A stretch of 63,739 nucleotides of DNA, filler included, from Guillardia theta CCMP2712 (Eukaryota > Protista > Cryptophyta), in the NCBI RefSeq assembly GCF_000315625.1. It is 6 parts of 6 records of this genome, joined end to end, with 100 filler letters (N's around TTAATTAATTAA, not from the genome) between each part and the next. Parts side by side here need not be neighbours in the genome. Positions count along the whole stretch, not along the records: positions 1 to 18,209 come from NW_005434485.1; 5 more parts are not named here. One strand, 5' to 3'. The stretch's first letter is position 1. Each line of letters starts with the position of its first letter. Made by a program: the position numbers and the translations under genes. Shown here in pieces: positions 1 through 18,209 of this stretch. Below the pieces are notes generated by a model. It worked only from the letters and a program-made list of their open reading frames with translations, was not told the origin of the DNA and did not search any database.

Positions 1-84
1 CCCTCGTCCCTCGTCCTCGCCCTCCTCCTCCTCTCCTCTCCTCTCCTCTCCTCTCCTCTCCTCTCCTCTCCTCTCCTCTCTCAC

Positions 85-1843
85 CTCCTTCCAGACAGCT
101 TCTGCACGATCATCCCACTTATCTTTGAGGATCTTGAATGCATTATCAGTACCTTGACAATCCTCCAACCATCCTCCTCCACCTCCTCCCTTCATCAACC
201 TCCTCCTCCACCTCCTCCCTTCATCAACCTCCTCCTCGACCTCCTCCCTTCATCAACCTCCTCCTCCACCTCCTCACAACTCCACTCTCTCCCCTGACTC
301 TTCCATCTTTCCCCTCCCTCCTCCCTCCTCCTCGTCTCTCCTTCCCTCTTCTCTCCCGTCCTCTACCTCTTCCAGCGTCAGCAGGAGCGCAGTCCCAAAC
401 GGCGCCAGGTACTCTGGGCGGACGCCATAGCGAATATGACGGATCGTCAACTCGAAGAGCTGCTCGAAGAAGGTCTGCAACATCAACAACGTCAACTCGG
501 TCTGAGTCAGAAACTCTCCTCACCTCCGGCTCCGCCAGACTCAACAGGAGCATCTCCATGATATGCTGCAGCAGCTTCCCCCACCTGGCAGGCAGCAGTC
601 AAGTCAGCCCTTGCAGCTTGCGAGCTTTCATGTTGCAGTTCGCACATGGTGAACGAGCGGCGGAAGAGATGGGTCTGTTCGGGCGACTGGTACCATCCAG
701 TGTCAGTTGGGGGATGGAGGCAGAAGAGCGCAAGCAGCAGCAGCAGCAGCAGGGACAAAGTGCGGGGAGGATGGAGAAAGGCGAGGAGGAGAGTGGGGGT
801 AGGAGAACAGGGAGTGAAAGGACAGTGGCAGGACAGCGGCCGAAGACGAGGAGAAGGGAGCGAAGGAACTGCTGCCCTACCTCATCGTTGAGATGCTTCC
901 AAAAGATAGAGCCCAAGTCCTTGCAAACAAGATGAGGAGAAGACAGAAAGAGCAAGCGCGAGGTACCTCAATATCAGTGTTCACCCTGACTTCCTGCCAG
1001 TGCTCTAGGATCAGTTCTCCCCTGCTAGTCTTCAGTCCGTTCAGCTCGTTGGTGAGACTCTGCGGGGAGGGGAAAAGAAGTCAAACTCTGAGTGACTGGC
1101 ACGTCAAGTCAGTTCTCAGGTCTCCCATCACCTCGACGAGGGTCTGCCATAGCCAGCGAATCGAGTCGCTCATGTGCTCCCCCCAGCTTTCAACGGGCAG
1201 CGTCAGGTTTGACAAGCGGCGGCCAAACAGCACTCACTTCTCTTCCCCCACAGTGTTCTTCAGTGCAACCTCGAACGAGTAGCCCAGTCCCTTCAGGTTC
1301 TCGCTCCTGATTCCCCTGAGGACGTGGACAAGTCAAACTCAACGACGGTAACAGCAAGTCCGGGTCTCCTCTCACCTCTTGTAGAAGCGAGGCGCGTAGA
1401 TGTACACCTTCTCCACCTGCTTCTCCGGCTCCCAGACCAGCTCACACGCCTCGGCGACAAAGTCGTACACGTCTCGTATCAGCAACTACCCAGAGAGAAT
1501 GTCAGTGATAGAGCCATCATGGCGATTGTTCACCTCGACTTCTTCTGACCCCGGCTCCTTGGATTGCATGCTGATCTTTGAGTTGGTCCGCTTCTGCCTC
1601 ATGGTGTGCGCTGATGAACAGTGAGCAAGTGAAGACAACAACGCATGTCTCAACCTTGACTGATCGTATGACCTGGCGCACTGCTGCTGTGCGAGAAACT
1701 ATCATCATCATGCTTGAAGTTGCCCCCCTTGAATGCGCTCATCCTGATGAGATGAGACACCTGGACAGGAGAAAAGCGTCAATGATACAACAATCAGCAG
1801 TAGGGAGAGCAGGAAGATGAGGAGCAGGAGCAGGAGAAGGAAA

Positions 1844-1907
<64 letters not shown>

Positions 1908-4370
1908 AGAGAAGGAGGATGAGGATGAGGAGGGGAAGGAGGAGGAGGAGGAGGATGAGCAGGAAGAGGAGCAACACAAACAACGCCAAGGCTATATGAC
2001 ACTGCAGGACGCGCAAGGCAAAGACGTCACCCCATTCTGGCTGACAGCAGACGTCGAGGGAGAGATCCCCGAAGCTTGGTCGGAGCCGATGCTGTTTACA
2101 ACCTTGGAGATAGTCCTGGAGAAGCTGGAGGCCGATTCCGACCTCAGCTCCTCGTGCATGTTCTCAAAGATGGAAGGGCAGGTGATCGCTAGCTCTGCCT
2201 GGAAGTTCTTCGAGAAGACTTCTATGTCGACATGCTCCCTTAGGTACAGCACTATGTGCTCCAACGACGTCCCGTAGTCCTCGCCGTTCTGAATTGCCTC
2301 CGCCATGTTCTCGCAGACCATTTTGATCACGATTCCCCATGACTTCTCGACCTCCGGCGTCCACATCGCCCCCGCCGCCTCGGAGAGGACGTTCATGAAG
2401 ACTGGACCGATCAGCGGGATGTGGTGAGGGCGGACGTTGTAGAGCACATGGCGAACTCCGAGCCAGGTGACCTGCTGCTTCATACTCTCAGGATCATCGG
2501 CGAACGACACTAGAGTCCCCAGAGTGTTTCCCATCTTGATCGCCATGACCTCTCTGGGCTTCGTGAACAAGCTTGCAACGTTGGGGGCGAGCTTGAAGAG
2601 TTGGTCGTAGATGAGTTCACCGAGGTCAGCCGGCGTGTACTGCTCGAGGATACTTTCCCAGCAGTCCCTCACCACACTGAGAGTGGATCCGACCTCCTTC
2701 AAGGACTGGTCCAGAGCCTTGGTCAGGAAGGCCCACATCCAGAGCCAGGCCTTCTTCTCCTCCTCCAGCATGTCATCGCCCAGAGTGCTGTCAAACACTC
2801 GCATCACGATCTCCTGCATCAAGGGCATCTGCGATCCCCTCACTCCCTTGCGGTGGTGCAACGGTGCAAGGTCGGCAATCTTGACGTAGATCTCTGCCGG
2901 CGAGTGGATGTTGTCAACGATGCTTGAAAGCATGTCGACGAACTTGGTCCCTTGCACGACCCTGTTTGTGAACCGAAACAACGGCTCTAACTCGTCAACG
3001 TCCCGTACAGACTCGTAGATGGAGAGGCCTAGATCAGCATAGGACACCTTCCGCAGCAGCTTCCTCCAAGAAGATACGATAAAGTTCGAATGGAACTTCC
3101 ATTCCTGCAAGTCCACCTTAGGGGCCTTGTTCTTCTTCACATGAACATGCTTCCGTCGCACGCGACTTGCTCGGAACACTCCTCCAGCCTGACGCAAGTT
3201 CGTCCCCTGCAGCGTCGACTTGGATCCAAAGTGGCTGCTCTGTCCTTGGAAGGACGTGGAAGCGTTCCGGGATGACACGGTCACGTCATCCCTCGACCTC
3301 ATCGATCTTGGAGACTCAACAGCATCTGCAGGCTGCGCTCCTGCGTAGTTCAAGAAAGAGGAAGAATTCAAAATCTTTCCCTTGGAAGAGCTAAAGGATC
3401 CAGACTTCCTCTGGAAAGAGTTGAGCGAATCGTTCGACCCTTGACTGACAAGCTTCGGCACAGGAGCACTTTCTGCCTCCGTGTTCATCATCGTCAAGGC
3501 AAGGAAAGGGCAGTTCCCCGCGTTCCCTTGCGCACCAGAGACCTTGGCTTGACCACTGAAGGGACATTGCTTGTGCTCCAAACTCTTTCTAGGAAAGAGG
3601 TCTTGAGCGATATTGCCGTTGGATCGAACCTCGCAGGTTCCCTGTTGTTCTGGGACAGCCTCGAGCTTCTGGCCATTTGAATGCTCAGATCCAGCTGCCT
3701 CCTCCTCGGCACAATCGTCCTGGCTCGGGTAAAAGGCGTCGAGTTTCGAGGAGTTCTGCATCGGAGTGACACTAACGGTCTCGTCCTCCTCGGGGATTTC
3801 TTGCAGGACGCCCCTCTGCGCAAAGGACAAGTCAAGGTGTGGCCGAGCAACCATGTCGGAGCTCTCCTCATCACCAACTGTCATGGTCGCACGAATGTCT
3901 GCGAGGTCAATGGTGTTAAACATCGCAGATTTCTCGATCCCTTTCTCCTTCTCCCTCTGGTTGGCACTTCCGAATGTCAGGTGCGATGCCACAGTCACTT
4001 GTGCAGTATCCGAAGTTTGCACAGCATGAGCCAACCTTCCATTGCTAGCAGCAATCGCCTTCCCGTCATCAGGCTCCACATAGTCTCCAATGTACATACC
4101 AGGAAGCAATGAGTGCGCGGCATGGGTGTGGATTCTCATGAATTTGTCAGTCGCGTCCTTTCCAGAGTTGCTCTTCATGATGTGCTCTCCTCCTGGATGA
4201 TGTGTGATGTAATTGGTCACATCAAAGACCATGTTCTGAACAATGATGAGGATCTTTCCGGTGTCTTGAAGCTTGACAACATCGGTGCGGGACAGTTCGG
4301 GTTGTTTCAATTTCTTTCTCCGTTCTTCAATGGCCTTGAGGGCAGCCGCATCAAGCTCTTTGCCCTTCAT
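85..4370 (-). CDS. Multi-heme protein: N-terminal cytochrome b5 domain + two CPF motifs + at least four tandem 3/3 globin domains; spliced, 3' end runs off window
   Basis: First exon (ORF 4370-1992) has the b5 signature VFDVTNYITHHPGGEHIMKSNSGKDATDKFMRIHTHAA with both axial His, then globin 1 (IVSSW..IYES..VVQGTKF..LAPLHHRKGV..AWLWMW) and globin 2 (VRDCW..LIYDQLFKLAP..LF..LGVRHVLYNV..WTPEVEKSW). Downstream GT-AG exons splice to ..YAPRFYKRGIRSENLKGLGYSFEVALKNTVG..WLWQTL (globin 3) and LILEHWQEV..DLGSIFWKHL..HLFRRSFTMWGKLL..LTIRHIRYGVRPEYLAPFGTALLLTLEE|ILKDKWDDRAEAVWKE (globin 4; exons 474-367 and 132-85). A donor at 84 shows the gene continues. Confidence 0.9.
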
Positions 4371-4979
4371 TTCTTCTGTTTGTCTTCACTCTAACTGTCT
4401 TCAGATCGACTGCATATGAAGACGTATTGCAAAATATCGTTCCTGTTTTGCAAGGTCAACAGAATGCAACAAGCATCAAAACGAAGGGGCAAATAAAAAG
4501 AATGCAATTCAGGATATCTTTCATACTGAGTACTCTTGAACGTTTCATGAGGCTGTTATGGACAGAATGCATGCACATGCAGCTCAGTTCACAATAAATT
4601 GTCTACAGGTCTCTCGGGCACATATCAGACATTTTCAGGGATCAGGGATCAAGAACGCAGCGAGACATTTTGAGCTAGACAAGTATCCCTGATCGCACGC
4701 AAACATGCAGAACAGTGAAGGATAAATGTATTTGTGCCATTGTGGAGGAGGGTCTAGAGAGCATGCCCTCATAGACGGTTCACAGGAATGCAGGGAAACA
4801 CATTCGTTCTCCAAACTCACAGGGGCAGTGCCTGGACCCATCACATTCTGCATGTCAGACTACTGGGAGGGGACCATTCAGGGATCTTTCATAAATTTGG
4901 GGAAGGGCGAGGGGATAGATGGAAGCAGGAGTCAGGACAGCATCATTCCACCCATGCGTCTCCTCTCCTGTCCTCTCTT

Positions 4980-5600
4980 GCTCGCAGCATTTTTTGGGTC
5001 CTCCCTTGACCCCACCCTACCTATAGCACCACCCCCGTTGTTCCTTACAAAACCACCCATACACTGTAACCATTTTATGGAGGTTGGGTTCCCGACCACC
5101 CCCTTGTAAAGCTCAAGAACTAGTACCCCCACCCCCTCATTTGATACACTTTGGTCGAACAATCTGCCCGGTTATAACGTACTACCCGTACTATACAGGT
5201 ATTTATCAGGGGTACTTGACATCCTACTACCCGTTCACATTGGAACCCTTCCACCCACCCCCGGAAATTCCTTCTCCCAAAATCCTTTCCAATCTCTTTT
5301 TTCCTCCGATGATCTATTAACCCTGTAGCGCATTTTGTACTACCCCTCCTGTTTCTGTTAAGATTGGGTACCCCCCTAGCATGATTGTAGGGCTATTTTT
5401 TTGGATCAGACCCCTTCAATTTCATACCCTACCCACCCTTGTAGACTACACGAATAGTACCCCTTCATTTCTCTATCAAAACATGGGTCCTTCGATGCAC
5501 AGTCCCCAACCCCACCATTCCCCTCTGGCCTCCACAACCCAATTGTTTGACTACCCCCACCCCCATATTTCATAGGAATGTTGAAAGGGTGAGGTCATCC
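4980..5600. promoter_or_regulatory. ACCC/TACCC-rich intergenic block, putative bidirectional promoter
   Basis: Dense non-periodic TACCC/CACCC/ACCCC words between the divergent starts of the globin gene (4370, -) and UTP20 (5751, +). Confidence 0.45.
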
Positions 5601-5750
5601 GAAACGTGAAAAAATGCCTTTTGGTGTTTCAGATGCTAAAAGCAAAAACTAGGTAAGGGAAATGTGAATGTAACGGTCCATACATGAAAAATAACGAACC
5701 TGCGTGGAACAACGGAGAAAGAAACGGATTGAAACGACTGTGTAACGGTT

Positions 5751-8700
5751 ATGGGAACGGTGGTATTCGTGACTTCACGTGCGGGTATGGCGTGGTCGGG
5801 GGAGGAGGAGGAGGAGCAGGGGCCGCTAACGCGGGAGGAGGAAAGGAGGAGGAAGGTCCAAGAGAGCAAGAACACTAAGAAGAAGAAGAAGACAACGAGA
5901 GAGAACAGGCACAGGTACCTTGGCTTCAATGAGCGTCTAGAAGCGGTACAAGTAGACGTTCTGAGGAGGACTGGGCGAGATGAGGGGAGGTCGACGGCGA
6001 GCTTGCTGGACGAGGAGCTGAGGGAGGAAAACGGGAGCCACTTCGAACAACAGATCGGGAAGTGGGGAGAGCTGAACCTCACAGACGACTTCACTGTCTT
6101 CCTGAACCAGGTGACGCCGCTGGTCGGTTCCCTCCCCCTCCTGCTGCACAACAAGAATGGTGTGGTGGAAGCGATCGTCCGCCATCTCTCGAAGGAGGAG
6201 AGCAAGGCCATCAAACCTCTCTGTGCATGTCTCTCTGCCTTGGCACGGGATCTTCGCCATGAGATGTATCCCTTCTTCAAGCAATCAGTCGTCCCCTGCC
6301 TTGTTGGCCTGCTGCAGACTACGGACGCGGAACAGCTGGAAGACGTTTTCTCGTGCTTTGCCTATCTCTTCAAGTTCTTGTTGAGATACGTCGTTGATGA
6401 CTTTTTCGACCTGTTCGACTCTCTCTTCCCCGTGCTCAGCAACCGCTTCTGGTACATCAGGAGGTGAGTTGTGCTGGTGCCGAGTCTTGCGAAGTTGGAT
6501 AACGCGGGAGATTGTGCGTAGGTTCTCCTCGGAAGTGATATCCTTCTTGCTGCGAAAGATGCCCACTGATAGACTAGAGATGAACTTGACTCACATGTTC
6601 CAGAGAGCAAGTACGTTTGTAGCAGACTTCGCTTCTAACAGCACGCGGTCCAACAAACTCAACTCAGAGCAGGTACAGTCACAAGAGAAACCTTGACAGA
6701 CTCTCTGAACTATCTTCCATTCATTGTTTATCATATCTTCTATCCCTCCCTCCCTCCCTCCCTCCCTCCCTCCCTCCCTCCCTCCCTCAAGCTTCCTCCT
6801 CGATTTTCTGACTTGGTTCTTGTCCATCTGATTTCAGGTATCTGAGCTCATCATTGACAAGTACTTTGCGCGCGTCTGTGAGCACTGCAGGCTGGAGCAG
6901 TCGGAGCCTCTTTGGACTGTGCTGAAGGAGCTTGTGGAGGAGGGAGCAGAAACAGGAGCAGGAGGCAGCTCTTTGCTGCTCCAGCACGCTCTAAGGTACT
7001 CAGCCATCGCCGTCGCTCATCGAGGAGGAGCTCGACTCGCTCATCCTCGGCTCATGTTCTCCTCTCTCCTCCTGTCGCTCCGCCTGCCCTCCGTCCTCGA
7101 TGGCTCCGACCCGGCGCTGACAGAGAGTGTTCTCCTCCTCGCCTCCTCCCTCCTCTGCCATGCAGCGGAGGAGGACGTGGAGGAGCACGCGGAAGGATGG
7201 TCGAAGATCTTCGAGCTGCCTGACAAGGAGAAGCTTCTGGCTCTCTGCTCGCGCGTCTGCTCCAGCAGCCCCTGCCCTCCTCTGCTCTCCTCCCTGCAGA
7301 GGTTCTGCAACAGGCTAGCGAGCGAGGATGTGCGCATGGCAATGCTGGCGCATGAAATCGCAGCCAGCAGCGTCGCTTCTCCCTCCTCCTTTCGAGCTGG
7401 GGACGAGCTGTACAGCCGCTGTCTGAAGGAGCTCGAGACGTTCGCTGCAGGGAAGGAGGAGAGGAAGAGCTCAGCGGTGTGGGAGTGGCTTGCTGTACGA
7501 TGTGTCAAGCACGTTTCGACCGCAGAGATGAGGAGGAGGAGCGTGCAGACGCTGAAAAGGTGGCGGACAGGCTTGGTAGGACAAGGCAACCTGTAAGGAA
7601 GGGCAAGGGGAAGGAGGAGGAAGAGGAGGAAGAGGAGGAGGGATACACGGAGAAAGTTGTAAGAGCTCTCCTCTCCTCGTCGCAGCATGTCGACGACGAT
7701 GCTCTCCTCCTCGTCGAGGTTCTCAGTACCGTCTCCTCCCTCCATGGCAGCTGCGGCTCAGCCAGCGCAACCAGCAAGGACGGGAAGAAGAAGAAGGCGA
7801 GGATCTCCTCACATGGGAGCAAGGAGGAGGAGCGAGAGGAGGAGTCAAGGGAGATGGAGGAGCTGATTGACAGCATCGTCCTCCTCCTGTTTCAGCTTCA
7901 TCCTCACAAATCAGTCGTTGTTCAGCAGCTCCTTGAGTACTGTCAGTGGAGCACGACGAGGTCGAGGCGTTCTGTCCTTCTCCTCGACCAGTGCCTTCCA
8001 ACGCTCTCCTTCAATCTCATGTCGTCTGACGGCAGGTAGTCTCCTCCTCTTCCTTCCCCCTCCCTCCCCTCTTCCCTCTCCTCCTCCTCCTCCTCCTCCT
8101 CCTCCCCTCCTCTCCCCCCTGATCTTCCTCCTTGATCTCTTGATCTCTCGCTACTCCTCCTCTCCTCCTCTTCCTGTTTGTCGTTGTTCTCCTCCCCTCC
8201 TCCTTGTACTACTTCTCCTGCTCCCCTGCCATATCATCGCTCCTCCTCCTAGTGTCTTCTGCTCCCAACCGCGCTTGTTCTGACTCCTCTCCTACCACAG
8301 CTTGCGTCTTTCCACCATCCGCCTCCTCGAATCTCTCCTCTCCTCCTCCTCTGCCGAGCTGGACCACTCAGTCGATCCCTTCACTGTCAACCCCGACCGG
8401 GCACTCCTGGACCTCATGAGGAGGGTTGAGGAGGCGCCGATGGACGCGGCGAGCGGGAGGATCAGGGTACTGAAGCTGCAGCAACTTAGCTCGGCCATCG
8501 AGTACAACAAGATCTCCAGCAAGTTCTTTCCTCTCGTCTTTCCCTTCCTCATCGGCCAGTTCAAGTGCAGGTTCACCCTCCCTTGGCCGAGCGTCAGGTA
8601 TGAAACCCATCCTTGCTCTTCCTCTCTCCCAGATCATGCTCTTCCTGCCTCCCCTCCTCTCTCCCTCTCTCCTGCTCATCGTCTCTCCTTCTTCTTCGCC

Positions 8701-11700
8701 TCCTCCTCTTGCCCTTTCCACCCCTCCTCGCCCCCCCCCTTCATCCTCCTCTCCCTCGTAACCTTTCGTTTCTTTCCTCTCTCCCCTCCCCTCCTCTCTT
8801 CCTCCCTCCTCCACACTCTCCCCTTACTTCTCGAGCAGGGACTGCATGGCCAAGTACGCGAGGGTCAGGACTGACGACTTCTGGCGCAAGCTTCTCGTCC
8901 ACCTCTCTCTTGCAGCGCAGGAGCCGACATGCTCGAGCCTGGAGGCCGCAGACCTCATTCTTCCTCCCTCTGAGCAGCAGCAGCAGGAGCGCGCGAGGGA
9001 GAGGGAGGAAGAGCGGAGGAAGGACAAGAAGAAGGAGAGGCCGAGCCCGGAGGTCGCCCTTGTAGCTCTGCCGCTGCTGGGGGAGGAGGACAGGGCCGAG
9101 AACTTGATGAACGGGAGGAGGAGGAGCCACAGGTTTTCTGGTACTCCAGCAGTCGAGCTGATAGTCCAGCTGCTGCAGTCAGCCAGCGTAGAGCAAAAGC
9201 TGTTTGACAGGAGGGCAGAGGGACTAGTCAAACAGTTCCTTCGCTTCCTCTGCTTCCAGTATGACCCGCTCTTTGCGGAGGACCAGGAGGCCCTGGAAGA
9301 GGAAGACAAGAAGAAGCTGCTGGAGACGGGGAAGGCGGAGGGGCGAGCGGGCAAGGGCATGCAGAAGACGAAGAAGAAGGCTAAGGGGATGAAGCAGCAA
9401 GAGAAGGAGCAGGAGCAGGAGACAAAGGAGGAGGAGGAGGAGGAAGGGGCAGGTACCCTCCTACGGTACGGGAGGATGGATGCAAATCGTATCTTAGTGG
9501 CGTACTTGGAGATTCTCTCTTCCCAGCAGGGGGCCACCAGGTTCGAGCTGGGAAAGACCCTCCACCGCATCTTCTACAACCTCCTGCCGAAGGCGCATAA
9601 CCGAATCCAGCAGCTCGCACTAGCTGGGCTGCTGCTGGGGGGGTCCGGTAGTCTGGTGCCTTACAGGGCTCAGCTGGAAAATTTGATCGACGACGAGAAA
9701 TATCGTGATGAGCTCGTGTCGTTCCAGGTCTCCTCTNNNNNNNNNNNNNNNNNNNNNNNNNNNNNNNNNNNNNNNNNNNNNNNNNNNNNNNNNNNNNNNN
9801 NNNNNNNNNNNNNNNNNNNNNNNNNNNNNNNNNNNNNNNNNNNNNNNNNNNNNNNNNNNNNNNNNNNNNNNNNNNNNNNNNNNNNNNNNNNNNNNNNNNN
9901 NNNNNNNNNNNNNNNNNNNNNNNNNNNNNNNNNNNNNNNNNNNNNNNNNNNNNNNNNNNNNNNNNNNNNNNNNNNNNNNNNNNNNNNNNNNNNNNNNNNN
10001 NNNNNNNNNNNNNNNNNNNNNNNNNNNNNNNNNNNNNNNNNNNNNNNNNNNNNNNNNNNNNNNNNNNNNNNNNNNNNNNNNNNNNNNNNNCCTTCCAAGG
10101 ATCGTCCGCATGCCCAAGGAGAATACTCAGTCCCTGTTGGCTTACTGGAGGGATTCCATGAGATGTCCTGCGACAAGGAGGTCAAATTCTCCCCCTCTCT
10201 CCTCTCCTCTCCTCCCCTCTCCTCTCCTCCCCTCTCCTCTCCTCTCCTCTCCTCTCCTCTCCTCTCCTCTCCTCCCCTCTCCTCCCCTCCCCTGGTTACT
10301 TCGTCATTCTTGACATATGAGATTGACGTTTTCACTTGCAGTTAGCAAAGTTTCTCTTTACCATGCCGGAAATTCTTCAGTCGGTTAGTCGCTGCCTCGT
10401 CCTCCTTCTTCATCTTTCTTGTCCTTCTCCTTCTCTACCTCTTCATCTCCTTCACTTCTTCCTTGTCCATCTCATTCCTTGCCTTCTCCTGTACCTCTTC
10501 AACTCCTTCCCCTCCTCTACCTTATCTTTCTCTTCTCCCCCATCACCTCCTCCTACAACTTTCGCCTCCTGTTCTCCTCGTACTCACATTCTGCTCAGAT
10601 CTTCGCTTGCCTCTCTGCTACCAACGCTTCCTCCTCAGTCCGCAAGGTAGTTCTCGCCATCCCTCAGTCCCTCTTCGAGCTCGGCATGCATGAGCCGATG
10701 AAGCCGCACATGGAGCAGGTGAGCACGCAGCACCCCTCCCTATCCCCTCGGAATGACCCCATCCCCTCAGCTGATCGACCATATCCACCTGCATCTGGAC
10801 TCCTTCATCAACAAGGGGGGTCTCAGGTCAGCAGGGGATCAGCTGGAGCAGTTCAAACTCATCGGGCTCCTCCGTCAGCAATTCTCCCTCCTCTGGCAGC
10901 TCTCCGAGCTTGTCTCCAGCTCAGTGCAAGCCAAGAAGCTGCTGGACGTCCTCGTCTACTTCCTGTCAGCTGGAAAGAAGTTCGGAGGCGTCGGGTCAAG
11001 GTGAGGCACAGCAACGAGACTCGCTCCCCCCCCTCCCCTCTCCTCCTCCCGCTTGTCCTCCTTGACCTCTTGTCCTCCTCCTCCTCCTCCTCCTCCTCCT
11101 CCTCCTCCTCGCTCTGCTCCTCCTCCTTCCCATCTCACTTCCTGCCAGCGAGGAGAGCCGAAGGCTCGTCCTCTTAACCTCCGCCAACCTCCTCAAGAAG
11201 GTCGACGACTCCTCCCCCTACGCGGCTCCTGCTGCCCTGCAGCTGCTGCCCAGGGGTCAGCCCGAGACTCGCCGAGCAGTGTGCGAGCTGATCGAGGGGG
11301 TTGGGCGGCCGCTGGAGGAGACGAGGGGGCTGGTGAGGGACATGAACGCCTGGAGCACGACTAGGCTGGAGGAGATCGACTTCGACCTGCGACTGCAGGC
11401 GTACACGCGCGCGAGCAAGCAGGTACAAGAGGAGGACGAGGAGGAGGAGGAGGACGAGGACGAGGACGAGGACGAGGACAAGGACAAGGACGAGGACGAG
11501 GACGAGGATAAGGACGTGCAGGAGGAGGAGGATGAAGAGGAGGAGAACGTGCAGGGGATCTTACTAGTATGCGCAGGAGTTTCTCCTTCAGCTGGACGCG
11601 AACAACCTGCGGGTGCTGGCTGCCCAAAGTCTCCACGACATGCAGGAGACAGACATTGCGATCAGAAATCACGCGATGGCGCTGCTGGAGCAGCTGTTCC

Positions 11701-14700
11701 TTGCTGTCAAGAGAAGGACGAGCGAGCTAGCTGCAGCAGCGTTGGAGGAGGACGAAGTGTGGAAGGTCTACATAGAGCTGGTTGCTACATCCCTCAGGAG
11801 AAGCCTGATGGATAAGAAGAGGGAGATCAGACAAGATGCGTTCAAACTCAGTAAGCCCTGATACTTTCTCTCCCCTCCCCTCCCCTCCCCTCCCCTCCTC
11901 TCCTCTCCCCTCCCCTTCCTTCCCCTCCCTCCTCTCCTCTCCTCCTCTCCTCCCCTCCTCTCCTCTCCTCTCCTCTCCTCCCCTCCCCTCCCCTCCCCTC
12001 CCCTCCTCCTCTCCTCTCCTTTGACTCTTCTACCCAGTCATGTCAGCAGCCTCCGTCTTCGACGAGTTCCACCGCGACCTCCTCCTCCTCACCCACGTCG
12101 ACGTGGAGCAAGATGTCAGCAAGAACTTGCTGCACATTCAGTTCCATCGCAGGATCAAGGCCATGCAACGGCTCAAGACGATCATAGCAGGAGGAGGGAT
12201 ACAACATTCCTCTCTCCGCCACATCCTCTGGCCTCTGATCTGGTACGCGATCATCGACCCGCAGGAGAAGGAGAGGATGAAAGCTACGGAGGGAGCATAC
12301 AACCTCTCGGAGGAAGCGGTGAGGACAGCAGGAGCTCTGTGCTCGCAGCTGCAATGGAGGGAGTACCGCGTGCTGCTGTGGTCGGCAATGCGGGAGCTAA
12401 CGATGGGCAGGGAGTACGAGAAGGAAATCATCAAGCTTGTTTGCTGCATCCTCGAACATTTCCACTTCGAAATCTCCTCCTCCTCCTCCTCCTCCTCGTC
12501 CATGGTTGTTGATGGAGCGGAGGGGTCGAAGGGGGAGGTGGCGAATGAAGAGACGAAGGAGGAGGACAAGGAAGGGAAGGAAGCGGAGGAGGAGGAGGAG
12601 GAGGAGGAGAAGCAAGTTCTAGTGCCTACCGGAGAGCAGGAGGACATTCAGGGTCACGTCGTGGAGAAAATCCTTCCATTCCTCCTCAAACACATGACGG
12701 AGAAGGTCTCGACGCTGGGGAGGGAAGAGAAGAGGGTTCAGCAGGGGAGACTGAGGGGTCAGATAGCGCTTGCAGTGGTCAGGACGCTGAAGCTCCTTCC
12801 TGAACAAATGCTTCGCTCCCGTCTCCTCCTCGTCGTCGGCGTCGTGTGCAACGCCCTCCGGTCGAGGGAGCAGGGGGACAGAGACAATGCAAGGAAGACG
12901 CTGGCAGAAATAGTCCGGTGCCTGGGCCCCTTCTACCTCAACTTCGTCCTCACAGAGGTCAAGCATGCTCTTCCTCTGGGTTACCAGCGGCATGTTTGCG
13001 GCTACACCATCTACTCTCTTCTTGAGTCCCTTGAGAGCATCTTAGCTGGGGAGCACCTGGTCCCCAGCATGCCTCTGATCCTCGAGGTGTACACGAGGGA
13101 GCTTGTGGGAGAGCTGGCAGAGGAGAAGGAAGTGGACAAGATCGCGCAGAAGCTGCGAGAGGCGAAGAGCACGAGAGCTTTCGATGCCGTCGAGCTGATC
13201 GGGCGATGCCTGAGCTTCGAGCTGGTGGAGACAACCGTCCTCCTGCCCGAGCACGAGTACGCACTGAGGAAGACGATCCTGGACGCGGGAAGCCTCAAAG
13301 TCAGGAGGAAGATGGAGGAGTTGTTGAGGAGACTGGGGATGGGACTGGCGGCCAACCCGTCGGTCAGCGACGCCAAGATGCTGATATGGGTGCACCAGTA
13401 CGTCGATCGGTACCTGCCGTCCTGTCTGCCTCCTGCCAAGGGAGCAGGGAAGGAGAAGAAGGAGGGCAAGAAAGGGAAGGAGGAGGTGGGAACGGGAGGA
13501 GGAGCTGTTGGGGAGGCAGGGCAGAAGAGGTCGAAGCTGCTGGAGAAACGGCCAGAACCTGCTGAGAAACTTCCCCCGCTCGGCCCAGCGTGGGAGAGGA
13601 AGTGCAGGACGCGGGAGGGAGTGAGCATGATGGAGGGAGGAGGAGGAAGGGGAGCAAGAGCGGGAGCGGGAGCGGGAGGGGCAGACGCTGTGAACAGGAA
13701 CGAGTACCTCCTGGTGGAGCTAGCGCTGACCCTCCTGCATGTCCGGCTGAAGAGGGAGAGCGTGGACTTGAAGAGCAAGGAGACGCTGCAGATGCTGGAC
13801 CCCTTCGTTCCCATCCTCACCCGCCTCATGCTCAGCAAGCACGACAGCATCGTCGTGCTCTCCCTCCGCTGCTTCACCCTCGTCCTCCCCGCCGGCCTCC
13901 CCGCAGTCCAGGAGGAGCTGCCATGGGCTCTCAGGAACATCTTCTGGCTGATGGAGCGAGGAGGAGGCACAGGGTCGCTGACGATGCAAGCATGCTTCCG
14001 AGCCGTCACCGTCCTCCTGCGGGAGGCGAAGAAGAAGATCAGCATGAGCCAGCAGCAGCTCCGCGTCCTCCTCTCCTTCGCACGTCAGGACCTGCAGGAA
14101 GCAGAGAGGCAGGGGGTAGCGTTCGCCCTGCTCCGCGCTATCATCGAGAAGAAGCTAGTGTGCGAGGAGGTGTACGACATCATCTCGTCAGTGTCAGAGC
14201 AGCTCGTCACCTCCCAGTCAGATCAGACCCGCGCTCTGTGCTCGCAGACTCTCCTCCTGTTCCTCCTCGACTACCCGCTAGGTGCCAAGAGGCTTCACCA
14301 GCACATGTGCTTCCTCATCCGCAACCTGGAGTACGAGTACGAGACAGGGCGGCAGGCCGTCCTCCTCCTCCTCCACCACCTCGTCGAGCGCTTCCCGCAG
14401 GAGCTAGTGGATCAGTTCCTTGACCTCCTCCTCCTCCCGCTCGTCGCCAGGATCGTCAACGACGAGTCGAACAAGTGCAAGGAACAAGTCGCTTCCTTGC
14501 TCAAGGCTCTGATCTCGCGCGCCAACAAGAAGCAAATCGACCATATCCTCGACTTCCTCCTTACCTGGTCCAAGGGGGAGGAGACGCTCCTACGCAGAGC
14601 TGCCGCGCAGGTGCTGGGGATCCTGGTGGAGCAGCAGGGGGCAGCAGCGGAGCGATACGTCGACTTGCTCTTTCCCCTGCTGGAGGAGGCAGGGGAGGAG

Positions 14701-15781
14701 GGGAGGACGAGGAAAGGCGAGTGGGAGACAGTTTACTTTCTGCTGTCCTCAGCGGAGAAGTTGCAAGCAGGAGTACCTAGGATCCAGGAGAGGAAGGGGT
14801 ACAAAGCTTCCTTCTCCCTCCTCCTCCACGCCGACCTCCTCCGTCACCCCCACCCTTGGGTGCAGACGGCAGCTGCTCGGCTGCTGGGCAGGGTGCTGGG
14901 CACGATTGACCCCAAGGCGGAGGGGAGGAAAGAGCTTGTCTCCCTCCTCCAGAAGTGCGGGGGAGCGTTCGAGGTCGCGCGATCTTTGTGCTCGCAGGTA
15001 GCTGGGGAGATGTTCGAGGAGAAGCTGGCGGAGCAGATGCTGAAGAACCTGGTACACTTGACTGCCGCCATGCACGCGAACAAAGAGATGGTTGGGGAGG
15101 AGGTGGAGATGGAGGACGAAGCGGGCTCTGCGAGCGAGGAGGAAGAGGAGGAGGAGAAAGAGAGTGGGAAGGCTGGCAGGATGAACGGGGTCGATCATGA
15201 AGAGGAGGAGGGGAATGGCACGGTCCCTGTGCAGAAAAAGGCGGAGGAGCAGGAGGAGGAGGAGGAGGTCAAAGAGGAAGAAGCTCCAAGAGCTGTTCGC
15301 TGGATTTTCGTGAGACTTTCTAACATCGGCAGAAGATACAATGGACAGAGAAGAGACTTCGTTTTCAAGGTCCTCCTCCTCCACCGTCCTCCCCACTCCT
15401 TCCTCCTCCTCCTCTCCACCGTCCCCCCATCCGACCACCACCACCACCTCCTCCTCCTCCTCCTCCTCCTCGTTTCGCTCCTTCGTCCTCTAACCCTTCT
15501 ACAGTTCTTCGCTGCCATGGGCATCAGGTTGGGCAAGTCAAAACTTCTTCCCCTCCTCCCTCACGTCGTCGCTCCTCTCTACCGAGCGCTCGAGACGGAT
15601 ACTGAGAGCAGCAAGGAGGAAGGAAGGAAGGAGCTGGCGCAGGAGGTCTGCGAGCTGCTGCAGGGGGTGGTGGGGCACGAGAAGTTCTACTCGTCCTACA
15701 ACCAGTGCAGGAGCAGGCAGAAGCAGAAGAAAGACAAGAGGAGAGCAGAGCGAGCCATGGCAAAGCTGCTCGACCCTGCTG
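5751..15781 (+). CDS. UTP20: U3 snoRNP/SSU processome HEAT-repeat protein UTP20 (DRIM); multi-exon, 3' end lost in gap 15889-16535
   Basis: N-terminal KKKTTRENRHRYLGFNERLEAVQVDV..SHFEQQIGKWGELNLTDDF..LPLLLHNK..LARDLRHEMYPFF. Central NLLHIQFHRRIKAM, LRSREQGDRDNARKTL..LGPFYL..GYQRHV, and FLLDYPLGAKRLHQHMCFLIRNLEYEYETGRQAV all match the UTP20 pattern. About 10 kb, consistent with a protein of >2000 aa. Confidence 0.93.
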
Positions 15782-16702
15782 GTACAGCCCCTCTTCCTCC
15801 CCCTCCTCTTGCTTCTCCTACCCCAAACCATCCACTACCCACCAGTCCTCCTCTCGCTCTTGCTCTTGCTCTTGCTCCTGCTCTCGCTTNNNNNNNNNNN
15901 NNNNNNNNNNNNNNNNNNNNNNNNNNNNNNNNNNNNNNNNNNNNNNNNNNNNNNNNNNNNNNNNNNNNNNNNNNNNNNNNNNNNNNNNNNNNNNNNNNNN
16001 NNNNNNNNNNNNNNNNNNNNNNNNNNNNNNNNNNNNNNNNNNNNNNNNNNNNNNNNNNNNNNNNNNNNNNNNNNNNNNNNNNNNNNNNNNNNNNNNNNNN
16101 NNNNNNNNNNNNNNNNNNNNNNNNNNNNNNNNNNNNNNNNNNNNNNNNNNNNNNNNNNNNNNNNNNNNNNNNNNNNNNNNNNNNNNNNNNNNNNNNNNNN
16201 NNNNNNNNNNNNNNNNNNNNNNNNNNNNNNNNNNNNNNNNNNNNNNNNNNNNNNNNNNNNNNNNNNNNNNNNNNNNNNNNNNNNNNNNNNNNNNNNNNNN
16301 NNNNNNNNNNNNNNNNNNNNNNNNNNNNNNNNNNNNNNNNNNNNNNNNNNNNNNNNNNNNNNNNNNNNNNNNNNNNNNNNNNNNNNNNNNNNNNNNNNNN
16401 NNNNNNNNNNNNNNNNNNNNNNNNNNNNNNNNNNNNNNNNNNNNNNNNNNNNNNNNNNNNNNNNNNNNNNNNNNNNNNNNNNNNNNNNNNNNNNNNNNNN
16501 NNNNNNNNNNNNNNNNNNNNNNNNNNNNNNNNNNNTGAGAAAGGGAAGAGGGCAAAGGCGAGACAAGAGTGAGGAGGAAATGAAGAGAGAGAGAGGAGGA
16601 GTGGGAAAGAAGAGGGAAGGAGGACGGGCAGAAGGTGGGAAAGGGGATAGCGAGGAAGGCGAGGAGAAAGAGGGTGGAGGAGGCACGCAGGTAGGGGAGG
16701 GA

Positions 16703-16932
16703 CCTGGCTGGTGAACGTTCCGATGAAAGCATCACAAGAAGCAAGGAGAACAAGGTCAAAGAGAACCTCTCGGAGGAACGAACCCTTCTCCTGCTCTCGC
16801 GTTACAAGCAGCACAGGCGGCAGCAGCACAAGAGGAGAAGGAGGAGGAGGAGGAGGACGAGCAGCACAAGAGGAGAAGGAGGAGGAGGTGGTGGACGAGG
16901 AGGAGGAGGACGAGGACGAGGACGAGGACGAG

Positions 16933-16965
<33 letters not shown>

Positions 16966-17253
16966 CAGCAGCAGCTCACGGCAGAGGATCGAAGAAGATC
17001 GTCCATGTGCAGACATCGCACGCCATGCGAGCAGTCGATTTCATCCTCCCCGCAACAGCTGGAAGTAAAAGGAGGAGGAGGAGGAAAAAGTGGAGGAAAG
17101 AGATCGAGGACGAATAAGAGGAACAGGAACACGATAACGAAGGCAAAGAGGCAAAGGAGAAGAAGATGGGAAGAGAGTAGGAGGAAGAAGACGAGGAGAG
17201 GTGAAGGACGAGGACGAGGACGAGGATGGGTGGAGGAAGAGAGGAGCAGGAGA

Positions 17254-17290
<37 letters not shown>

Positions 17291-18032
17291 AAAAGTGGTA
17301 GTGGAGGAGGCGGCGGCGGAGGGGGAGGAGGCAGAGGAGGAGGACTCACGAATATTTTTGTCTGTCATCGATGTCTTGGACGTCAAACTAATGGGAGAAA
17401 TGAGCGATTAAAAGAGAAGAGGCAATGGTAGGGTTGTGGTGACAACAAGAGGGAACATCGGCAAGGGTTGAGTCAATGGGAAACGTGAGGGAAAGAAGAG
17501 GGAAGAGAGAAGAAATCAGAGAGAGGGGAGGAGAGGAAGGAGGGGAGAGAGGGGAGAGGGAAAAGGTGGAACAGAGGAGGCAGGAGAACGGGAAAAGAGC
17601 GAGAAGAGAGAAAGAGTGAAAGGGAAAGAAAGAGAGAAAGAGAGAGGAGAGGAGAGGAGGAGGAGAGGAGAGGAGACGAGAGGAGACGAGGAGGAGGAGA
17701 GGAGAGGAGAGGAGAGGAGAGGAGAGGAGAGGAGAGGAGAGGAGAGGAGAGGAGAGGAGAGGAGGAGAAGAAACGCAGAGGCTACAAGCTGAGGGAAAGA
17801 GTTGGAAACGTTTTACCTGCAGGTGCGGCAGAGCATCTTCGAGTTGTTTGACTACTCCCTGACCTCCGTTGGTGGCGAGGAAAACATGACGAAAGCCATA
17901 CCTGAGAGGAACAACAATGAGGAGGAGGAGGAGGAGGAGGAGGAGGAGGAGGAGGAGGAGAAGGAGGAAGGTGGAGGATTGGCCTGCGACGTAGAAGACG
18001 TTGACGTAGTCTTCCCTCTCCTCGCTCACCCT
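16703..18032 (-). CDS. Fucosyltransferase-like (FUT8/GT23 fold) protein, partial, both ends uncertain
   Basis: Exons encode YGFRHVFLATNGGQGVVKQL and FLREVLFDLVLLASCDAFIGTFTSQ, matching the conserved 'VFLATD' and 'DxxLLSxCDxFxGTFSS' motifs of alpha-1,6/alpha-1,2/O-fucosyltransferases. Confidence 0.7.
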
Positions 18033-18209
18033 GAACTTAATGGTGTTGATCACCCTCTTGCTCGCCGTCCTGATCATTACAGTTACCGCAGCTGCTGCGA
18101 TCGCGATTGTCACCGCAGCCATCGTCCTTACCGGCAGCGGCGCGTCCGCTCTGGGCTAAAGCGTCTGCTGCGGCATGCTCTCCGAGGCGGAGGCGGCGCA
18201 GTCTCCAGC

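Follow-up and report, generated by a model that had tools for sequence, protein, structure and literature searches.

The third globin of a multidomain protein encoded in the nuclear DNA of the cryptophyte Guillardia theta CCMP2712 is, as judged from profile comparison and structure prediction, a real folded globin-fold domain, and its residues suggest that it is haem-less. The gene, GUITHDRAFT_120658, lies on the minus strand within the first part (positions 1 to 18,209, NW_005434485.1) of a 63,739-nucleotide stretch of DNA joined from six parts of the genome assembly, here called the window; its start ATG is at 4370, and all gene coordinates given below refer to the minus strand. Translation of exon 1 from the window is 100% identical to the annotated 1060-amino-acid protein (P0001), which was treated as EKX33177.1 by Smith, Vinogradov and Hoogewijs (2014, Biol Direct 9:7; PMC4101818). 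The protein contains four consecutive globins, of which globins 1, 2, and 4 have the proximal His F8. Because the residues that would hold haem have been lost in globin 3, and the domain is expressed and conserved in cryptophytes, its function is probably regulatory or structural, and not the binding of gas.

A reading of this DNA from sequence alone, hereafter the sequence-only reading, had proposed that the proximal His F8 of globin 3 is replaced by Phe, and this was confirmed: codon 1386-1384 is TTC, and the ungapped alignment of YAPRFYKRGI with LAPLHHRKGV (globin 1), LGVRHVLYNV (globin 2), and LTIRHIRYGV (globin 4) places the Phe in the His column. In the RNA contigs the Phe exon shows no variant letters, and His F8 is not restored by any of their junctions; a splice form with His at this position, which the same reading had named as evidence against it, is thus absent from the transcript contigs. 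Helices E and F of this globin 3 contain no His at all. The comparison was extended to 27 domains of the globin 3 type (G3-type), from the 8 Guillardia theta paralogues, Hanusia, Chroomonas, and metagenomes, and to 26 sister domains from the same proteins. His occupies the F8 column in none of the 27 G3-type domains (15 Phe, 7 Leu, 3 Tyr, 1 Val, and 1 Asn) and in all 26 sister domains, and within Guillardia theta six paralogues have Phe and two have Leu. The conservation of the F8 replacement, which the sequence-only reading had proposed to check, holds as the absence of His, with a choice of substitutes, and this absence across the G3-type domains exceeds chance.

The remainder of the haem pocket has changed as well. 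Haem-binding haemoglobins, by the criteria of Vinogradov and Hoogewijs (PMC4101818), possess the proximal His F8 and combine Phe CD1 with an aromatic or hydrophobic B10, and globin 3 has neither the His nor this combination. At the CD1-equivalent position it has Met or His, and its relatives have Ser, Ala, Cys, or Leu, whereas 25 of 26 sister domains have Phe or Tyr; at B10, an aromatic residue is present in all 26 sister domains, but globin 3 has Gln and its G3-type relatives vary. Similarly, Leu at F4 (25 of 26 sister domains) is replaced by Tyr, Ile, or Met in the G3-type domains, and Ile or Val at F9 is replaced by Phe or Tyr. The E7 column of the G3-type domains holds Leu, Ile, and Val (seven each), and E12 is Trp or Tyr.

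Homology of globin 3 to its neighbours and its predicted fold were supported by several comparisons, the whole-domain ones being made with the annotated protein P0001, which is six residues (GHTISQ, inside the insert described below) shorter than the RNA-supported form. Alignment of the 27-member G3-type profile with the profile of the 26 haem-type sister domains by hhalign gave a probability of 99.2% (E 1.1e-19), and the match was collinear, with helices A-C before the insert and helices E-H after it. The AlphaFold2 model, computed with the G3-family alignment, contains seven helices, and 136 residues have a predicted local distance difference test (pLDDT) score of ≥90; helices A-C correspond to model residues 2-18, 21-35, and 37-59 (pLDDT 93-96). 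The top structural match of the model (residues 1-232) in VIA-align was thermoglobin (7dih; Z 15.2, 135 of 137 residues aligned, root mean square deviation 2.5), with lower scores for neuroglobin (Z 14.9), flavohaemoglobins (about 14.5), RsbR (10.8), and a phycobilisome linker domain (ApcE 4xxi; 8.5), so that among the matches listed, which were globin-fold chains, the haem globins scored highest. In a Foldseek search against PDB, all 50 matches listed were globins; their E-values were weak (0.011 or worse), an effect probably due to interruption of the alignment by the insert. The model thus predicts the 3-on-3 sandwich of helices A-H, the profile similarity agrees with it, and the structure prediction called for by the sequence-only reading bore out its claim of a globin fold, with a core pLDDT of >90. 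The sister haem domains (D1, D2, and D3 of EKX33177.1 and those of the paralogues), which are M-family or single-domain-globin-like 3/3 globins, share with globin 3 the helix order and lengths, the 'G-V/I-K/R' motif of the FG corner, the 'A-W-x-x-W' motif of helix H, and the predicted fold. Globin 3 differs from them in the replacement of F8 His by Phe or Leu, in the loss of the B10 aromatic, CD1 Phe, and F4 Leu, and in the possession of new Trp and Tyr residues, a W-E-P-E-x-Q corner, and a disordered C/E insert of 60-250 amino acids.

The 87.1-Mb genome (669 contigs, with the window part corresponding to C189:61979-80243) was scanned for paralogues, and at least 8 paralogues of the gene were found in Guillardia theta, all 8 of which have a homologous E/F exon that is open and in frame. 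An exhaustive HMMER search identified 31 relatives in 1.84 billion proteins, among them sequences of Hanusia phi, Chroomonas sp. CCMP1168, and MMETSP or metagenome origin; a word-based protein search with the G3 region retrieved nothing beyond the query protein and a single fragment from Hanusia. The G3 core is kept from Guillardia to Chroomonas and metagenomic relatives at 15-34% identity, and it contains residues of its own that are invariant or nearly so: Pro855 (27 of 27), Glu860 (26 of 27), Arg875 (25 of 25), Trp909 (25 of 25), Trp911 (26 of 26), Gln858, and W853, the position of which is aromatic (Trp, Tyr, or Phe) in all G3-type domains. The pattern of losses and gains in the G3-type domains, as read from the alignment, is the opposite of neutral decay.

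Two further observations concern the relatives of globin 3. In the Hanusia phi transcript P0004, the F helix of globin 3 (…APRLYR) leads directly into the E helix of globin 4 (WWGHLIHHI…), and this junction reflects either skipping of exons in an isoform or a chimera made in assembly. In the Guillardia/Hanusia clade, helix C of globin 3 begins with Cys-Pro (Cys731-Pro732 of P0001, about 2178-2183), whereas the sister domains have Ala-Pro; the dipeptide, which we take to resemble a haem-regulatory motif, is not kept in more distant relatives.

The structure of the gene was established from ten GT..AG joints in transcript contigs X1 (4362 nucleotides) and X2, from two studies. These joints define the exons 4370..2031, 1760..1655, 1610..1534, 1485..1376, 1315..1238, 1186..1132, 1059..967, 919..881, 686..646, 584..524, and 474..367, of which the first codes for a cytochrome b5 domain and, after a long linker of low complexity, for globins 1 and 2 and the start of globin 3. 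A DNA-type run (X10) represents the unspliced genomic form of the gene, and a raw-read RNA run (X14) yielded 2 reads; the transcript evidence is that of contigs and reflects the major isoform. The features are as follows.

4080..4286, minus strand: N-terminal cytochrome b5-like haem-binding domain, amino acids 29-97, with the HPGG motif (Pfam PF00173, E 2.3e-17).
2664..3083, minus strand: globin 1, amino acids 430-569, F8 His in LAPLHHRKGV (Pfam PF00042 and alignment; D1 of Smith et al. 2014, PMC4101818).
2280..2663, minus strand: globin 2, amino acids 570-697, F8 His in LGVRHVLYNV (Pfam PF00042, best stretch 587-687).
2151..2279, minus strand: globin 3 helices A-C, amino acids 698-740, inside exon 1 (hhalign to sister-domain helices A-C; AlphaFold helices).
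2031..2150, minus strand: insert part 1, amino acids 741-780, Ser-rich and forming the 3' end of exon 1, with the donor GT at 2030-2029 (joint 1757/1760 to 2028/2031 in X1 and X2; exon check).
1761..2030, minus strand: 270-nucleotide noncoding intron holding the (AGGAGC)26 microsatellite at 1820-1973 (skipped in contigs X1 and X2; Tandem Repeats Finder).
1655..1760, minus strand: insert mini-exon of 106 nucleotides, VSHLIRMSAFKGGNFKHDDDSFSHSSSAPGHTISQ, opening with the VSHLL-type motif (transcript joints, exon check, and motif kept in paralogues and relatives).
1534..1610, minus strand: insert mini-exon of 77 nucleotides, (A)HTMRQKRTNSKISMQSKEPGSEEVE (transcript joints and exon check).
1376..1485, minus strand: exon coding for helices E and F of globin 3 and the EF corner between them, including the family motif W-E-P-E-K-Q at 1434-1417 and the Phe codon TTC at 1386-1384 (transcript joints and alignments; homologous exon in all 8 paralogues).
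1238..1315, minus strand: globin 3 exon with the FG corner (G-I-R, the Arg being nearly invariant) and helix G (transcript joints, alignments, and exon check).
1132..1186, minus strand: globin 3 exon with the GH corner and helix H (IRWLWQ, with W909 and W911 conserved; transcript joints, alignments, and exon check).
967..1059, minus strand: exon with the end of globin 3 helix H, a short linker, and globin 4 helix A (transcript joints and exon check; D3 of Smith et al. 2014 starts here).
367..919, minus strand: globin 4, in four exons (919..881, 686..646, 584..524, and 474..367), with the F8 His codon 438-436 in LTIRHIRYGV (joints and a loose end at 367; exon check; expressed sequence tag EG728842.1).
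About 135-85, minus strand: next exon after globin 4, ILKDKWDDRAEAVWKE, after which the gene leaves the piece (sequence of the expressed sequence tag EG728842.1 in the supplement of Smith et al. 2014).

Every RNA-defined exon is in frame, and all but one are identical to P0001. The annotated model uses a donor 18 nucleotides upstream of the RNA-supported donor at 1655 (window 1655-1673), and P0001 consequently has no GHTISQ. The annotated C terminus (…TLEEVEDGREEG…) results from intron read-through after …TLEE, giving VEDGREEG…VEL* (window 275-366); the real continuation past …TLEE is ILKDKWDDRAEAVWKEVWKRAANSMSRGLSL, which is present in the RNA contig and in the expressed sequence tag quoted by Smith et al. 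(2014). Globin 2 has relatives in PDB (3s1i/3ubc, E 1.6e-11).

The surroundings of the gene were also inspected. Its divergent neighbour (5751-16572, plus strand) is an unrelated housekeeping gene, that for UTP20, small-subunit processome component 20 (PF20416, E 4e-55), and the zones at ~9.8-10.1 kb and 15.9-16.6 kb that seem low in G+C content consist of N letters and do not represent AT-rich DNA. Introns and flanks are rich in purine/pyrimidine microsatellites, namely (CCTCT)14, 3.8 copies of a 29-bp unit, and (AGGAGC)26 (9-80, 166-275, 1820-1973, and elsewhere), read-through of which mimics Ser-, Leu-, or Pro-rich open reading frames.

Helices A-C of globin 3 (SLEHIVLYLREHVDIEVFSKNFQAELAITCPSIF, about 2270-2166) are separated from helix E (LLIRDVYDFVAEAC, from 1485) by an insert at the C/E corner, between …CPSIFENMHE and LLIRDVYDF…. 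The insert is coding and present in the mRNA, because the spliced transcript contigs of both studies carry the joints 2031|1760, 1655|1610, and 1534|1485. Our own first gene model, in which the insert was a single intron with 2103 joined to 1485, was refuted by the same joints. The sequence-only reading had described more than 100 amino acids of Ser/Arg-rich sequence spread over several exons; the insert indeed has about 100 amino acids (95 in P0001 and 101 in the RNA-supported form) in three exons and is Ser-rich (25% Ser), but it is not Arg-rich (5% Arg). That reading also needs correction at 1820-1973, where the (AGGAGC)26 microsatellite is noncoding. In the AlphaFold2 model the insert (model residues about 60-135) has a pLDDT of 44-49 and is predicted to be disordered.

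All relatives contain an insert at the C/E corner, about 60 to about 250 amino acids long, of low complexity and poorly conserved sequence, so that of the insert conservation asked about in the sequence-only reading only the position is constant, whereas length and sequence vary. However poorly the remainder is conserved, the members of the Guillardia/Hanusia clade and a single metagenomic relative share a short motif, (V/L)SHLL.xSA, and the VSHLL-type motif of mini-exon 1760..1655 recurs in four paralogues (L019, L020, L021, and L024). Basophilic Ser sites (RRxS and RxxS) occur in each family member, and there are three R/K-x-x-S/T sites in the present insert. The two mini-exons sum to 183 nucleotides and form a frame-preserving pair, the skipping of which would keep the frame. 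In the distant relatives P0015, P0018, and P0030, the inserts hold up to three basic amphipathic GKxKWKTALxAVKA repeats, which are like a calmodulin- or membrane-binding helix; the repeat is absent from the Guillardia insert.

Downstream of globin 4, the gene appears, from its sequence context, to run on into a six-transmembrane PKD/TRP-like cation-channel domain. The assembly has a gap of N just below window position 1, and past it, on the same strand, there are transmembrane segments matching the ion-channel part of relatives (C189 below 61979; L017 2483-4864). Four relatives (P0009, P0025, P0029, and P0035) contain globins together with PF00520 or PF08016, and linker and channel exons are located downstream in all seven other paralogues. 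The architecture common to all 8 paralogues and several relatives thus appears to be cytochrome b5, four globins, linker, and channel. Literature searches on globin-channel fusions found no relevant paper. The C-terminal channel points to a possible globin-controlled ion channel.

The explanation that we favour, with moderate confidence in it as a composite, is that globin 3 is a folded haem-less globin with a filled cavity, acting as a structural or relay partner, and with the disordered loop as a regulatory handle. According to this proposal, a 3-on-3 globin would have been born by duplication of the neighbouring haem-binding globins in a cryptophyte multidomain protein and would then have lost its haem site through the change of F8 His to Phe or Leu and the loss of the B10 aromatic, CD1 Phe, and F4 Leu. 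Aromatic residues would have been gained at E12 (Trp or Tyr), in the W-E-P-E-x-Q of the EF corner (Trp), at F9 (Phe or Tyr), and in helix H (Trp), and most likely they fill the former haem cavity, an idea based on residue identities. Selection would keep globin 3 as a non-haem module, most likely one that serves the haem globins on either side as a partner in structure or signal relay, and the disordered Ser-rich C/E loop, with its VSHLL-type motif and basophilic Ser sites, may serve as a regulatory handle through putative phosphorylation or motif binding. A more far-reaching possibility, to which we assign a low probability, is that these proteins are haem-based, gas- or redox-gated cation channels of cryptophytes in which the haem-less globin 3 is the transducer to the pore, tuned by a phosphorylatable or calmodulin-binding loop. 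Part of such a scheme would be that globin 3 pairs with the flanking haem globins and passes their state, redox or ligand-bound, on to the pore as a conformational signal; if true, it would be a eukaryotic pseudo-globin relay without a described counterpart.

Several observations weigh against the proposal or narrow it. Globin 3 on its own scores 15.4 bits with Pfam PF00042 (cut-off 22; E 0.028), and phmmer found no match for it among the PDB sequences. The loss of F8 His speaks against canonical haem ligation only, and the 27 G3-type sequences share ancestry and do not represent 27 independent events. The contigs reflect the major isoform, and there may be a minor in-frame isoform with a shorter loop produced by skipping of the 183-nucleotide pair. 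Finally, for the GUITHDRAFT_120658 copy we infer the continuity with the channel across the assembly gap.

The most serious rival, although an unlikely one, is that globin 3 binds a cofactor in a non-canonical way (haem via another ligand or, as phycobiliproteins and RsbR do, another hydrophobic molecule, for example a bilin or a fatty acid) and is thus a sensor of a second kind, not an empty module. In favour of this, the domain has an intact fold under strong conservation, and cryptophytes produce bilins. The Guillardia/Hanusia clade has the Cys-Pro at C1-C2, and this dipeptide or the His of the loop VSHLL motif would be the candidate haem ligands, but both are clade-specific, and the family as a whole conserves no candidate ligand residue. 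Other non-haem globin families reuse the pocket, and in phycocyanin the analogue of the proximal His is hydrophobic and usually a Tyr (PMC8717448), where the G3-type domains have Phe, Leu, or Tyr. However, the E7-equivalent position is occupied by Leu, Ile, or Val and not by a bilin-attaching Cys, and the F8-equivalent position has no conserved Arg as in RsbR. The lack of constraint at B10 and CD1 suggests that the distal pocket is out of use, and the extra aromatics at F4, F8, F9, and E12 suit a filled cavity.

It is still less probable, and indeed very improbable, that globin 3 is a decaying relic, a passive spacer between globins 2 and 4 under neutral drift. The lost haem ligand, the Pfam score under the cut-off, and the tolerance of a long insert of variable length and sequence are in line with decay, but the core conserved from Guillardia to Chroomonas and the metagenomic relatives at such low identity, the G3-specific residues (Pro855, Glu860, Arg875, Trp909, and Trp911), the open and in-frame exons of all 8 paralogues, the confidently modelled core, and the inclusion of globin 3 in an abundant transcript all argue against it. 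The notion that the insert is an annotation artefact and that the true mRNA joins helix C to helix E (donor AAG|GT 2103, acceptor 1486) is hardly credible. It is true that splicing from a phase-0 donor at 2103/2102 to the acceptor at 1486 would keep the frame and yield a globin of the usual length, that the region contains a microsatellite, and that rare isoforms are invisible in contigs; yet the contigs of two independent studies carry the three joints given above and never 2103|1485, the insert occupies the same position in Hanusia transcripts and metagenomic relatives, and the VSHLL mini-exon is conserved in paralogues. For the major isoform this notion is contradicted.

The globins of Guillardia theta were surveyed in 2014, and three domains were listed in EKX33177.1 (PMC4101818). 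Globin 3 is missing because that census required His F8, and YAPRFYK is absent from the files of PMC4101818. The D3 of the census is globin 4 of the present work and was described there as 'lack the H helix' because the annotated model is truncated. The 211-residue single-domain globin of expressed sequence tag EG728842.1 (PMC4101818) has the globin 4 sequence and reads on through the true splice junction. In the published total of 13 globin domains, globin 4 therefore seems to be included twice and globin 3 left out. Recognition of globin 3 also amends the number of domains published for EKX33177.1. Our literature searches found no paper describing globin 3.

The sequence-only reading had likened globin 3 to the non-haem globin of bacterial stressosome RsbR proteins. 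Both have a 3/3 fold without proximal His inside a larger assembly, and the N-terminal domain of RsbR (PDB 2bnl) aligns with globin 3 over 128 residues (Z 10.8). RsbR is not known to have a large C/E insert. In the accounts of Murray et al. (2005) given in PMC7475203 and PMC8717448, RsbR is a sensory or regulatory globin module in a signalling assembly, and its proximal-His analogue is a conserved Arg (PMC8717448). This position is Phe, Leu, Tyr, Val, or Asn in the G3-type domains, and globin 3 is not fused to a STAS partner domain in a stressosome protein; its context is eukaryotic and consists of cytochrome b5, globins, and a cation channel. Its origin is also independent, from eukaryotic haem globins of the same chain, which it matches better (Z about 15). 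The likeness in fold without proximal His thus stands, whereas membership in the RsbR family does not, and the comparison is best taken as a functional analogy only.

For the splitting of a globin by a regulatory segment, the closest precedent is androglobin, a chimeric metazoan globin that likewise sits in a large protein and is split by an embedded segment (PMC9249397, PMC13696810). Androglobin is circularly permuted around an internal IQ motif that binds calmodulin (PMC9249397, PMC13696810), whereas the globin 3 alignment is collinear from A to H, with the haem ligand lost; no IQ motif was identified in the insert, for which no IQ scan was made. Phycobiliproteins, which occur in cryptophytes, are a further possible parallel. 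Together with photoglobin, they are bilin-binding proteins that share with globin 3 the globin fold and a hydrophobic or aromatic residue at the proximal-His analogue (PMC8717448); in contrast to them, globin 3 has no Cys at the E7-equivalent position (seven each of Leu, Ile, and Val in the family), matches ApcE (4xxi) at a Z of only 8.5, and is set among haem globins and not in an antenna protein.

Non-haem globin folds are few. RsbR, the phycobiliproteins, and photoglobin are named in PMC8717448, to which PMC7475203 adds other non-haem globin-like proteins, and those named families are prokaryotic or plastid-related. Here, a haem globin appears to have been turned in situ into a conserved haem-less module amid the tandem globins of a eukaryote, with a long disordered loop. 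With 8 copies in the Guillardia theta genome and its cryptophyte relatives, this family provides a natural system for studying the role of the globin fold after haem loss.

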